From Podarcis bocagei (taxonomy: Eukaryota): a stretch of 64,000 nt of DNA. The stretch's first letter is position 1, and each line of letters begins with the position of its first letter. The stretch lies in assembly GCA_964188305.1 (NCBI GenBank), contig OZ076888.1; one strand, written 5' to 3'. This document shows, in pieces, positions 13,255 through 36,698 of the stretch. The notes beneath the pieces were generated by a model, which saw only the letters and a program-made list of their open reading frames with translations, ran no database searches and was not told where the DNA came from. The position numbers and the translations under genes are program-made.

Positions 13255-13701
13255 ATGAAACCCTGCAAACTGAATAGCAGCATGGATGCTAGCTTGGAAA
13301 CGGACCTCCAGTGCCGAAACGGAACAGTCTGTGCAGCAAAGTGTGGCTCTGAGCGTGTGGAGAGCACTGCCAAGCGCAGGCTGGCTGCCAACGCCAGGGA
13401 AAGGAGAAGAATGCAAGGGCTCAACACTGCCTTCGACCGCCTACGCAAAGTGGTCCCCCAGTGGGGGCAAGACAAAAAGCTGTCCAAATACGAGACGCTT
13501 CAGATGGCCCTGAGTTACATTATGGCCCTGACGAGGATCCTCGCTGAAGCCGAGAGATACAGTGCAGAGAAAGGCTGGATTAACTTTCACTGTGAGCACT
13601 TCCACCAGGAGAGTTGCCACGCTTACACAGGGCAGAAGGTGGCAGCTGAAACAGACCCTTATGCGCAGAGACTTTTCAGTTTCCAGCCAGACCACTACTA
13701 A
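13255..13701 (+). CDS. ATOH7: Atonal bHLH transcription factor 7 (single exon, 148 aa)
   Basis: b[60 protein letters not shown] is diagnostic of ATOH7/Ath5; lies between PBLD and MYPN. Confidence 0.98.
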
Positions 13702-27196: not shown

Positions 27197-27608
27197 CTGT
27201 CATGATTGTAAAGAAAGGAGACTTAGGCTGCACACTTACCTGTGAGAGTAAGTCTCACTGAACTCAACCAGACTACATTCTACACCATTGTTGCGGTGCC
27301 CCCGAGGCTCTGCCCCCAGTGTAGCTGAACTGGTTGTGCTCTCCTAAATCTGTCTCTGATAGTTGCTACAGCTACAATCCTATACATACTCACCAAAAAT
27401 TAAATCCAACTGAATGGAGAATGGCTGATTTCTTCTCATGGGCTACTTCAGATTGAACAGTCCACTAAGAATCCCTTCCCCACCACATTCAAATTAATTT
27501 ACTAGGTGATCACAAGGCATTGTACTCTAAGCCTTCATATACACTATATATTTAAAACACATCTCCAGCATCGTCTTCCCTTCTGTTGGATTTCTGTGCA
27601 CCACCTAC

Positions 27609-27830
27609 CTTAGGTATAGGAATTCCAACAATTTTGCAAGTGAAGGTAGCAGGGTACCCTTCCAAGACACGGAAATGCTTGAGTCTTTTGTCGAAGATTG
27701 GGGCAATGCACTTGCCCGTGGGGATCTCATCATGCTCAACTTCATCATCTGATTCATCCACTGGGGTACGTTCAAGGCGAAACTCTATTTCGTTCATCAA
27801 TCTCTGCTCAAAGCTGGAAATTTTATATTC
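27609..27830 (-). CDS. MYPN: Myopalladin exon 13
   Basis: 222 nt; EYKISSFEQRLMNEIEFRLERTPVDESDDE...IAPIFDKRLKHFRVLEGYPATFTCKIVGIPIPK. Confidence 0.97.
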
Positions 27831-30800
27831 CTGCAATATAACCCAGTGGAGGGACATAGTTACAAAATTTGTACTCCAATATATTGCTGAAATCACAGTT
27901 CACGGCAGATATTTCAATGTTGTTTCCTCCATCTTCATAGAGACTGGCTATTCCCAGAACCAAGCAGTAGGACCTTTCCAAATGAAACCTGTGCATTGAG
28001 ACATGACTTCAACCTCTGTTTTTACCATGGGTGAGATCAAATGGGTTTTGGATTTCTCCATTCCATTCCAGCTTCCTTCCCTTGCTCTCCCCAAAATGAA
28101 CTGACCATCACTGACCTTCAGACCATCACTATTTTGTGTGAGACTTCAAGTGTGTATTAGCAATTTAGGTTTTTGCAATTAAAGTGGATTTAAAACGTTC
28201 TGTTGCCCTAACACAATAAATCTACTTATAACACCCCCCCAGACATTTTGCAGATAGAAAAGTGACAGGAAAATGCACTGAAAAGTGTAGAATGAGCAAG
28301 CGATTAACAGAAAATATATAAACACCCCATAAACAAATCAGTACAAAAACCGAACAAAGACTGGACATAGTGTAATATCCATGTAAGCTTCAGGCAAAAT
28401 AGGATAAATGCTCAATAAGCATTTCATTTGGAGGCACCCTGAGTTATCCTGAGTCTTGCTCCTGATGTCACCTGGCTAAACTACAAAGGGTTAGAGGCCT
28501 GCAGCCTCATGAAAGGACACACCATGTACATTTCCTCTTCTACTTGATTTGTTTATCCTGAGGGTCCAATTTGTGAGATTCTTCACCCTCAAAAAACACG
28601 AGGATTGCACAAAAATAGTTCCTGCATGTGTTGGCTTTTGTCAGGAGCACTAAACATTAATGGAAGTCCATAGATAGCAGAGAGGACACACTTTTCCATC
28701 ACACAGAGACTGGCAGGTTGAAGCTTCTTAAGCATCAGCTTAACACCTGACTAGGACTAGGCAAAAGGTGGAAGATCTTAATCACAACTCTTCCCTCTTT
28801 TTTTAAGAAAAGTATTAGAAGTTGCAGGGAGTCCCCAAATTTGATCAGGAGTGTGGCACTGGGGGAGGGGATTCGACCCCTTCCCTCATGATGTTTTCCT
28901 GCATAAAAGCACCCCTCTCCCACTCCAAAACATGTTTTTTCCAGCAGGGAAAAACATGCAGGCACCCACCATATGATACCTGTCCATGTGCTAATGAAGA
29001 GTTTGAACATATGCTACGTGTGCTATTATTGTGTTATAAAATAACCAGACATTTCCCCTTTAATTTCTCCCTTCCCCGGGAAAGTCTTGAGAGCAGTATA
29101 CTTACTGCCTTCCAGGTCATGGATGCACAATGGTAACTGAATTAGTTATAAAAATTTGTATTCCAAGCTAAAAATAACTTAGATAATTGTTGACAGGTAC
29201 TTCCATGACTCATTTGACTAGACCCTGTTTACTACTGAATTATTGTTTATATAATACCATTTTACTGGTTTGTACATTGTATCTCTGTTTTTAGGATACT
29301 GTTTTATTGTTTTTATGGTGTATTTTTGTATTCAGTACTGTACTCCTTTTAAATAAATAAATATTGGTTGTTTTAATTTTGTCCCAATCTATCTTAAATC
29401 TGACAATGAGAACAAGCATGTTGATAGTGGGCTTTCTTGTGTGTGTTATTTTTTTAATGTCCATCTATCCTCCTTGCATGGAATCAAACGTTTGTTTTTG
29501 GAATTTGAAGGGCTATGGACTACTCTTAAACTGAATTGCCTATAAATCTTTCACTGAAGGGCAAATAACATCAGGACAATTTTAATTGGGAAAATGCTAT
29601 GTGGTTGGGATGGTTAAGTCCCTCTTCCCACAGTGCTATGGGGAATCTTTCTTTTCTTTTTCTCTCTCAGTGTGTGCGGGGCATCCTAATTATGGTTTTC
29701 TGCATCACATTGAATTTGATCCTTAAAACATGTCCTTAAGGAGAATGGTTTTCATAAGTTCATCCAACAGTGAAAGACTGAGCCATGAAGCCATGAGTCC
29801 ACCACTAGATGGGGGTCGTCAGATCACCTTTGGGTTGGCTGTGCTTCATGGCTTTTCACCAGCTGGCATGCAAAGCCTATCCTTCTAGAATTTCACCTTG
29901 TTTAGTTTTCTCTTTCATGAAGCATGCCTCAGCAAATTGCTATACAAAATGGAGCAAATTCCTGTCTCAGTTACTTGCTTCTGATGGTTGTTACAGAATG
30001 CCTTTGCAAAATAGAAAGGCATGAGCTTCTAATAGTTGCCAACTGAAAGCACTTATTCTATGGTAGTAGATAAAAAAGGTCAAACATTCTGCTTATTGCT
30101 TTGTGATCTAAGCCTCCAAAATTGCTAAAACTAAGGTCAGTCTGAACCAGGGAAGTGCTGGACCCCCGAAATCATATACAGTATCTCAGCTCAGTCAATA
30201 GATGCAGTATTCACACTTGACGTATTTAACTTGAGGTAATTTTAAACTGGCTTAATATTTTAACTTCTGTATGTTTTAAAAGTACGGTTGTGAATTTTTC
30301 CCTTTTTATAAAATGCTTTGAGGGTTTTTTACAATCAAGTAGTATGGTACATAAATTTTATAAAATTAATTAATTAACTAATTAAAGGGCAAACTAGATG
30401 TGCAACAGGCAGCATATGTGTTTAAATGTGTGGGTTTCCTTGCAATATGCACAGAAACAGGAGCCCAGACCTCTCTTAATCATTGCTTTTGCCTCTATTG
30501 CAGATAGAAACCCAGGCATTTAATATGCACATATGCTCACTATGTATATTTTATCATTAAATGAGCCCTTTTGTACCATGTTAAAACTGTAAAAATGTGA
30601 ATTGACAAGTCACTCATTCTTAGCCTGTAAACTGGGAATAATAGTGTCTCTGTGAAGTACTTTGGGATAGGATGGGATTATCTAGCTAACTAACTAAGTA
30701 ATAACACATAGAGCTAATGTCCTTCTACAATTTAGAGCTTCTTTACTGTATGGGTTCACAGAACATCTGTCTTGAAGTATAGCCTTCTTGTTCTTAACAA

Positions 30801-30874
30801 ATTGGGAGCTTCATAATTGTCAAAAAATGTCAACTAATTGTCAATAATTATCATGGAGGTATTTTCTGTAAGAA

Positions 30875-30876
<2 letters not shown>

Positions 30877-30926
<50 letters not shown>
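30877..30926. repeat. (AC)25 microsatellite, read as (GU)25 in MYPN pre-mRNA
   Basis: Read directly from sequence. Confidence 0.97.
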
Positions 30927-30928
<2 letters not shown>

Positions 30929-31031
30929 CCCGCCACTTCCAATTGTGTTAATGGCTGAATTTCAGATTTTCAAATTCTAGTCATCAGATTTACATATGGA
31001 GCCTAGATTAGCAGGGTTAGCAGGGTTGTAC

Positions 31032-31124
31032 CTTAGATACATCCTGAGCTGTAAAGTTGAAGATTGGGGTATCATTGCTTGGTCCCTGAAGCTTGCGAGC
31101 CAGATATTCATCATAGGTTGCTCT
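31032..31124 (-). CDS. MYPN: Myopalladin extra in-frame exon '12b' (93 nt, palladin-like)
   Basis: Acceptor cttccctctaccag|, donor AAG|gtacaa, phase 0-0, stop-free. RATYDEYLARKLQGPSNDTPIFNFTAQDVSK resembles the palladin segment RLTYEERMARRLLG..ATVFNI that precedes EYKVSS. Confidence 0.8.
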
Positions 31125-33949
31125 CTGGTAGAGGGAAGTAATGGGATTAGGAAAATGTTATGATGATTTATATGGGCATAATTTTAATAAAATCTAGTAC
31201 AGGCAACAGAATGGAGTTTCAGAAGTGACACGTAGTGTGGGGTTTGATTAATCACCCAGTACTGCAGTGCACACACCATTTCAAATAATTAAGAGAGCAC
31301 AGAGTATTTTACAAGCTGGAAGGGACAGTTTAACTCCCAGTGATGTGAACTAAAAAGTCCCCACTGGTTAAAATGAGGAGCTGAATTGCAAATTCTGAGG
31401 TAAAAAAAATTATTCATTTCCTTCTTACTACATGGAGGTAGTGGGGATGACTGAGAGACCTTCCTTTCTCCCCCCACCCTCTTGTAAAGTTTGAAACAAA
31501 CACCTTAAAAACAAGGATGGGGGAACCTGTGGCTATCCAATGTTGTTGGATTATAAGTCTCTCATCCTTGAACAATGGCCATGGTGGCTGGGCCTGACAG
31601 GACCTGGAATTCAACAACATATGTGAGCTATAGGTTCCCTATCTTTGCTTTAAGTGTACTTTGGTAACAACTGAGGGCTTTGTATGGCTGAGGATGGCTG
31701 CAGCAGCCCTGTGGGCTAATTCTCCTTTGTACTTACAAGGAGATACCGTTTTCAAAATCAATAAATTGTTGTTTTTTGTTAAAATTTGTCCTTTCCTTTT
31801 GGCTATTTTGAATTAACTTAAAGGGGTCTATGTGGCAGCATTGATTTAACCAATAAGAAACAAAAATAAAGCTTGGGACATTCTTGTTGTTTTGTTCATT
31901 CTCGTGTTCCTTAAAATATTATAATTAATTGGGAAAACTAACATTAATTCTTGGCATTTACGACTGGAAGATAAATCAGAGTATACTCTGTACTCTGTTT
32001 ATATAAAAGCATTAAAGAAGACTATAGCGCTCTGCTCTGCAACATTTTCAGGAAACTGAACAAATAAACCCAGAATTTCTCCAATGAAGTTGTTCGCTCC
32101 TGATACCAGTGGAACAAAAACAGTCAGATTGAGGCCTTCTTTCTGTTTCAAAATGGGCAGAATGCTAGGGCCCTGTAACAAAAAATGAGCAGACCCCGGT
32201 AGAAAAAATGATGGGAAGATGCACTGGAAATCGTGGAATAACAACACAGTGGGATAACTCAACACAGTGTCATCTAACCTCTCTGCAAACAAATCCGGAT
32301 AAATGCTCAATAAACAAGTCGTCTGGTAGCAATCAGAGCCCCTTCTATTGCAGCAGCTATTGTGTGGCTGGCAAAACACAAGGAAACTTCCCTGCGAATG
32401 CTATCCAATCCAAGCAACAAAGGCGCATCTAGGGGAGCTTGACCAGCTCGGTCACACCAAGCATGGAGATTCTGGGGCGCTGCAACTGTGACATCCAGCA
32501 GAAGGAGGGAGTTGGGGAGGGACACACACACCAGATTTTGGCATTGCACAGGGCGCCACAGAAATTTGAGGTGCCAAGGTCTGCCACTGCAAGCGACCCA
32601 GCAGAGGACACCCTTCTCTCTGATGGGGCCTCAGCTTTCAGCTCTGCCTGACCTCACCACAGAAACCAATGGCACGCTAGGACTGAAGCCAGAAGATGGA
32701 GTTGCTGGAATGACTAGCAAACTGCGGCTCCATTATTTTCAGTGAGAACTCTCCCCTTTCAGGAAAGCAAGGAGAGTTTGCTGAGGGGAGAGAAATACTA
32801 TTGTTGAGTTGCTAGGGAGGATTTCTGTGCACATGCTCAGTAGGAAGGAGGCTCCTTAGCAATCATTTCTGTCAAATGTTTTGGTGGACACAGAAAGCAG
32901 GTGTGTATCCTGAACTTGACACTGAAGGGTTGAAAGTGTCAGTCCTGCCTGACTTTGTCACAGTTCCTGTCTTTGCTCTGCCCTCTTCATACCTCTTCTG
33001 GTTCTGGGAGACCAGAGGGGAGGGGAGAGCAGGAGGGCTTCCAAGCGAGAGGCATTATAGCAGCTCAAGCCAAAGGACTAAAGAGGCCACAGAACAGGGG
33101 GAGTCAGGGGTTTTAGGGGTGGGGCAGAAGAAAAGAGAGGGGTGAGGAAACAGGGTAATGGGTATTTATTTATTTATTGTTAATGTTTCTATACTGCCTT
33201 TCTGTAAACCAGCAAGGCAGTGTACAACTGATCAGAAACAGTAAACAGCATTAAAAATATATCTTTAAAACCTAAGTCACTGGAGCACAAAATGTGCAGG
33301 AGGAATGACTTGTTGAGATGTCACTGGGCAGATTCACGTTGGGGCAACGTTAACATATTACACCTGCTTCTTTCATGCAGCTTCCCCTACCTCAGCTCAG
33401 GAAGACAGGTGGGAATTGAGGCAGGACACACGACACGGTGTGAGCAGCATAAGCAGATGCTGGCAAAAAGAGCAGCAGAGCTTCTGGGAAAGGTCAGCCC
33501 AATAAATTAAGCTGATGATTCTGAAGGGCTTTAGAACTCTGCTCTCTGCCACTCCACATTCAGCTTTTATAAAAACTATTCATTAAACCCAGATCTATCA
33601 CTGATATAGAAAACCTGATTTTTAAAACATCAAGTGCTTTAAACATACTTGTAATACAACAAACTAATGAACAAACTTTTAATTGCTCACACAAACTACA
33701 CTGGTCCCTTGGGTTGGCACCAGAATGCGGTGCAGTTGGGCATTTGCTGTGATGTCAAGATCTGCAAAGGGGCCCAGCACCCCAAAAGTGCAGCCATTCA
33801 CACTTCTTGTGAAGTGTTCAAAAAGGGTCAGATGTGGCATGTTAGTATGTTCCACTTCTCCAAGGTTAAGGGTAGGTGCCTGGTCTAAGGTACACTCCTC
33901 ACCACCACCACAAAAAATATCCTAGAGCAAGTACTTTTAGACCCCATCC

Positions 33950-36553: not shown

Positions 36554-36698
36554 CTGCGGGCCATGTGGAAATACATCGTCCCGTAAATGCAGTCTTTTCT
36601 CCAGGTCCTTGACAACAGCAGCTTTGTGATCTCTAATTGAATCTTCTGTTGGCAGTGGCAAAGGCCTAAGATTTTTCTTCACCGTTCCCTGGCTTCCA
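36554..36698 (-). CDS. MYPN: Myopalladin exon 12
   Basis: 145 nt, phase 2-0; GSQGTVKKNLRPLPLPTEDSIRDHKAAVVKDLEKRLHLRDDVFPHGPQ; donor gtaag. Confidence 0.92.

Follow-up and report, generated by a model that had tools for sequence, protein, structure and literature searches.

The question raised by this locus is whether a short open segment inside an intron of a lizard myopalladin (MYPN) gene is a genuine exon and, if so, how it is used and how old it is. The gene is one of those associated with cardiomyopathy and nemaline myopathy. The original prediction, based on the 64,000-nt stretch of Podarcis bocagei DNA analysed here (the window), described the segment as a hidden, palladin-type exon of 31 codons, ancestral to the family and lost or skipped in mammals. 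From the evidence presented below it is very likely that the segment is an ancient, alternatively spliced MYPN cassette exon in this lacertid (wall) lizard, carrying a linker module of the palladin/myotilin type.

Identity of the gene in the window

Sixteen MYPN coding exons were located on the minus strand between 59686 and 22452 by tblastn of MYPN proteins, and the cassette is the 17th. The myopalladins of P. muralis, P. raffonei, L. agilis and Zootoca matched the window collinearly over exons from 59683 to 22452, with 85-100% identity per exon (tblastn), bearing out the earlier assignment of the gene to MYPN, whereas palladin (P0033) matched with 30-75% identity (tblastn). P. muralis isoform X1 was 98.3% identical to the window over the first coding exon and 96.9% identical over the cassette, where one residue differs. 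A HMMER search with the 74-residue downstream exon retrieved 164 relatives with MYPN and PALLD at the top; a Pfam I-set domain was recognised on the lacertid slice (E 1.1e-18), and the EYK[IV]SSFEQRL box before Ig3 was invariant in alignment A1. The window gene is a MYPN orthologue, closer to myopalladin than to palladin.

The window also contains a single-exon open reading frame of 148 aa (13255-13701, plus strand) in which Pfam recognises a bHLH domain (HLH, E 4.5e-21); judged by its sequence, it is a candidate ATOH7. In human, ATOH7 adjoins MYPN (10q21), so that an ATOH7 in this place would fit conserved synteny.

A 93-nt cassette between two constitutive exons

The features of the cassette and its neighbours, in order of transcription, are as follows.

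36554-36698, minus strand: upstream constitutive MYPN exon, ending ...HGPQ in phase 0 (acceptor ...ttgtAG, donor CAG/gtaaga; MYPN tblastn matches cover 36694-36554)
31125-31150, minus strand: acceptor AG and polypyrimidine tract of the cassette, kept across sauropsids
31032-31124, minus strand: MYPN cassette exon, 93 nt, 31 codons, phase 0-0 (translation, spliced contigs and tblastn)
31026-31031, minus strand: cassette donor gtacaa (joint 31031>27829 in contigs of two runs)
27609-27830, minus strand: downstream constitutive MYPN exon, EYKISSFEQRL..., 74 codons, leading into Ig3 (contigs cover 27606-27832)

Read in frame 1 from 31124 to 31032, the cassette encodes 31 residues (RATYDEYLARK...QDVSK); the other frames are unusable, one being interrupted by stops and the other yielding an unrelated peptide, and in-frame stops flank the cassette on either side. 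The acceptor reads ...cttccctctaccAG and the donor AAG/gtacaa, so that the cassette has both canonical AG/GT sites and a length divisible by three. Translation and splice sites thus confirmed the predicted stop-free, phase 0-0 exon of 93 nt with a good acceptor between the HGPQ and EYKISS exons. Because both junctions are in phase 0, the reading frame is preserved by inclusion and by skipping.

Such features do not by themselves prove an exon, since the same intron of 8,723 nt holds 311 AG..GT segments of 60-300 nt that are stop-free in frame, 205 of them at least 93 nt long. Crude splice filters are passed by seven of the 311, and it is the conservation and RNA evidence described below that singles out the cassette among them.

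Codon 7 of the cassette (31104-31106) is TAT, encoding Tyr, at a position occupied by Asn in other squamates and by Lys in turtles, crocodilians and ratites (…YDE[NK]L…); judged from this comparison, the Tyr is the derived state, a substitution of this lizard's lineage. A perfect (AC)25 repeat on the plus strand (30877-30926), which corresponds to (GU)25 in the MYPN pre-mRNA, was observed 106-155 nt downstream of the cassette donor; none of the other sauropsid loci in the alignment has it. UG repeats are able to bind splicing factors.

Both splice forms are found in related lizards

Assembled contigs covering positions 27400-31400 were examined for run X1 (organism A) and run X9 (organism F), both from related lizard species. 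The contigs cover exons and not introns and therefore behave as transcriptome assemblies, RNA being our guess at the library type. An inclusion contig of 151 nt, in which the 93-nt cassette stands between 27 nt from the upstream and 27 nt from the downstream exon, was present in both runs, spanning 31127-31031 joined to 27829-27803 at a depth of 10.9 (X1) and 30.3 (X9). Both runs also contained a skip contig of 58 nt that leads from the tail of the upstream exon to 27834/27833-27803 (depth 16.3 in X1 and 17.8 in X9). The loose 27-nt ends of both junction contigs match the last 27 nt of the ...HGPQ exon. Taken at face value, and with contig depth as a rough measure of level, inclusion amounts to about 40% in X1 and 63% in X9. 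The raw RNA runs X23 and X24 placed one to two reads on 27400-31400.

Including and skipping MYPN mRNAs thus both exist, as had been predicted, and the 93-nt segment is a genuine alternatively spliced cassette exon whose two forms co-occur within each sample in the assembled contigs of the related species.

The cassette in public gene models

RefSeq holds two myopalladin models for Podarcis muralis, X1 (XP_028585226.2, 1356 aa) and X2 (XP_028585227.2, 1325 aa), and these sizes are exactly those predicted for the two isoforms. Both forms are present in the RefSeq models of three lacertids (P. muralis, P. raffonei and Lacerta agilis), while the Zootoca model carries the insert. Pairs of X1 and X2 models that differ by 31 aa were also found for Hemicordylus (1356/1325), Sceloporus, Elgaria, Pogona, Rhineura, Anolis sagrei, Crocodylus, Gavialis and Rhea, and the insert is part of listed MYPN proteins in skinks, geckos and turtles. 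Among fishes, the MYPN proteins of bichir, sturgeon, gar, bowfin and paddlefish, and likewise that of lungfish, contain a RLTYE.KMARRLLGP..VFNF version of the insert, and X1/X2 pairs occur at the same junction in skate, eel and Labeo.

The exon had been put forward as hidden and new. It proved to be modelled already, from skate and zebrafish to reptiles and rhea, and since the insert is annotated widely across vertebrates the novelty falls away on the prediction's own terms. The MYPN cassette is already known from public gene models and is ordinary. No paper on it was found in the literature searched.

Homology to palladin, myotilin and fish MYPN

Alignment A1 and a motif scan revealed an order common to palladin, myotilin and MYPN, in which the RLTYEEKMARRLLG module comes after a helix of the IQG.KDA.IQDLERKL type and is itself followed, in PALLD and MYPN, by the EYKVSSFEQRL helix and Ig3. 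The place of the module, directly after an IQ/IR-x-x-K-x-A-x-[IV]-x-DLE[RK]KL helix and an exon end of the ...NGQQ type (...HGPQ in the window), is also that of the lizard insert (alignment A1). In tblastn searches of the 64-kb window, bichir MYPN (E 2.3e-6), sturgeon MYPN (E 7.8e-5) and palladin (E 2.8e-4 and 9e-3) all matched at 31124-31032, and the peptides of palladin and fish MYPN had no match in the window outside the cassette exon. Searched against the cassette, peptides from crocodile, turtle, rhea, bichir and palladin gave E values from 1e-14 to 3e-4 (tblastn). These E values, together with alignment A1, uphold the homology that had been proposed between the peptide and the corresponding segment of palladin.

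In gar, lungfish, bichir and zebra shark a second, micro-exon of 17 aa, of the DLKYMIESTRNTLGKQQ type in MYPN, separates the cassette from the EYKVSS exon, and some PALLD isoforms have a different 17-mer at the same intron position (proteins P0187, P0391, P0555, P0528, P0013, P0439 and P0434). A search for this micro-exon in the window and in four sauropsid loci gave no counterpart.

Conservation of the exon and of its upstream intron

Loci were fetched from Hemicordylus, Sceloporus, Eublepharis, Crocodylus, Rhea and emu, sauropsids whose lineages span some 280 My. The 93-nt exon is intact, with AG and GT, in all six, and both its length of 31 codons and its frame are constant in all sauropsids examined. 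The exon has 77-94% identity to the window across the range from geckos to crocodile and rhea, compared with 36-47% for the intron 51-150 nt downstream. On the upstream side, identity is 66-78% over the last 50 nt of the intron and 31-67% in more distant parts, and the final 25 intron bases before the cassette are near-identical in lizards, gecko, crocodile, rhea and emu. The cassette donor is gtacaa in five of the six sequences compared and gtacag in Sceloporus.

The dN/dS comparison proposed as a check was uninformative, because synonymous divergence is suppressed (0.10-0.29 even between lizard, crocodile and bird). The values for the cassette, 0.46 to 2.4, do not by themselves demonstrate purifying selection at the protein level. 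Regulated alternative exons are usually constrained at silent sites and in the neighbouring intron, and such constraint here suggests that inclusion of the cassette may be regulated.

Absence from the mammals and neognath birds examined

The flanking exons are joined directly in every mammalian MYPN protein among those retrieved, and no remnant of the cassette was detected by tblastn and blastn in the corresponding introns of a bat and the Tasmanian devil (loci L001 and L003), in agreement with the predicted absence of the exon from mammalian MYPN. In birds, neither tblastn nor blastn recovered the cassette from the duck intron (L004). In crow (L011:30710-30776) the conserved intron upstream survives over about 65 nt, the acceptor AG has become AC and no exon body is recognisable; read from its sequence, this relic marks the loss of the exon in a neognath bird. 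The emu locus (L010:35154-35246) has an intact 93-nt orthologue with AG/GT, and the RefSeq emu proteins (1347/1348 aa) omit the exon, probably through a gap in the gene annotation.

Given its absence in therians and in neognath birds (duck and crow), the exon was lost at least twice. The proposal of an ancestral palladin-family exon lost in mammals therefore stands as regards ancestry and mammalian absence, but the loss is not specific to mammals.

Predicted structure and possible function

AlphaFold2 modelling on alignment A1 placed two helices (19-39 and 86-101) confidently on either side of the insert and gave Ig3 a pLDDT above 90. The insert itself (model residues 50-80) had pLDDT values mostly below 50, with a short helix at 55-60, so that the 31 residues are predicted, with low confidence, to be mostly disordered and to lie, with a conserved helix on either side, shortly before Ig3. 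Solved structures do not reach into the segment, the palladin entries matched beginning at Ig3, and no binding partner is assigned to the module in the literature searched. The alpha-actinin EF34 motif of the family lies farther towards the N-terminus, and the disordered flanks of the myotilin Ig pair, including flank 185-250, strengthen F-actin binding (PMC8062120).

In the explanation that we favour, an ancient cassette, the spliceosome either includes the 93 nt between the ...HGPQ and EYKISS exons or joins the two exons directly, and the result is two in-frame proteins 31 residues apart (1356 and 1325 aa in the P. muralis models). The insert is the MYPN form of the RLTYEEKMARRLLG..VF module of palladin, myotilin and fish MYPN, situated in a linker with the helix IRDxKAAVVKDLEKRL before it and the helix SFEQRLMNEIEFRLE after it, followed by Ig3. 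Largely disordered by prediction, it may change the length of the linker or add a short linear motif beside the actin-binding region of Ig3.

A further step, which we advance tentatively from sequence comparison, is that the cassette might act as a regulated switch, for example between heart and skeletal muscle or during development, which would alter the spacing or the motif content between the helices beside the actin-binding Ig3; on this proposal the ancestor of jawed vertebrates would already have had it, and therians and neognaths would have lost it independently. If so, the view of MYPN as a single-isoform protein would be limited to the therian and neognath lineages.

Alternative explanations

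We regard as rather unlikely, though deserving of weight, the alternative that the exon is conserved yet neutral, inclusion being splicing noise in a disordered region of the protein, such that mammals and neognaths could lose it harmlessly. This would agree with the predicted disorder of the insert, with dN/dS values near or above 1 in distant pairs, with the repeated loss of the exon and with the literature, in which MYPN is stated to be a single isoform in human and mouse and the human protein is reported to work as such (PMC2169455, PMC10069870). It accords poorly with the constancy of length and frame in the sauropsids examined and with the strong constraint on synonymous sites and upstream intron; alternative use of the exon is moreover modelled from skate to reptiles, and palladin and myotilin keep the module without variation.

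It is very improbable that the exon is constitutive and the skipping form an artefact of annotation or assembly. Turtle, skink and some gecko records do list the including form only, but both forms are modelled by RefSeq in three lacertids, and X1 and X9 each contain the skip form as a separate 58-nt contig at depths comparable to that of the inclusion contig.

A chance pseudo-exon, that is, an open AG..GT segment of the intron never or only accidentally spliced, would have 311 comparable segments for company, seven of them with decent splice signals, but is refuted by the spliced contigs of two species, by the conservation of the exon as an island of 77-94% identity in an intron that is about 40% identical across sauropsids, by the presence of the insert in dozens of annotated proteins and by its homology to, and alignment with, the palladin/myotilin module. 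The idea that a repeat or transposon became an exon recently in lizards, for which no support was found although the intron does hold repeats such as the (AC)25 tract, is equally refuted by orthologous exons from skate to crocodile (ray-finned fishes, lungfish, turtles and ratites among them) and by the paralogous exons in PALLD and MYOT.

An ancient, alternatively spliced cassette accordingly remains the explanation that we adopt. It means that single-isoform MYPN holds for the mammals examined and not for vertebrates generally, as reptiles, the ratites examined and fishes keep the exon. The result goes in no respect beyond public gene models and has no direct bearing on human MYPN; it is useful for annotating lizard genomes and for comparing Z-disc proteins between species.

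Comparison with known systems

The closest parallel is provided by the RefSeq X1/X2 pairs, which share with the window the gene, the intron and the 31-aa insert and, in P. muralis, also both isoform lengths; they are automatic gene models of species other than that of the window. In zebrafish, mypn isoform 1 (NP_001352226.1, 1904 aa) and isoform 2 (NP_001352227.1, 1877 aa) differ by the orthologous exon, which sits at the same junction (...FGQQ/EYKVSS) and has the core GP...[VF][FI]N[YF] in common with the lizard. The zebrafish cassette differs in having 27 residues instead of 31 and is strongly diverged in teleosts (KPMCFVGEMRHPLGPN...).

In palladin, the segment RLTYEE[KR]MARRLLGADSA..VF occupies the same position, between the DLERKLRFK helix and EYKVSS, and is 41-46% identical to the lizard peptide. 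In contrast to the MYPN cassette, it is found in every palladin protein examined and is longer (33-35 aa), with an acidic tail, whereas the sauropsid MYPN insert ends in FNFTAQDVSK. Myotilin likewise has the module, as the segment RLTYEEKMARRLLGP..A.SV following the same helix, IQGSKDA.IQDLERKL; in human MYOT this probably corresponds to about residues 178-200, next to the disordered flank 185-250. Myotilin differs from both other family members in being without the EYKVSSFEQRL exon that follows the module in MYPN and PALLD.
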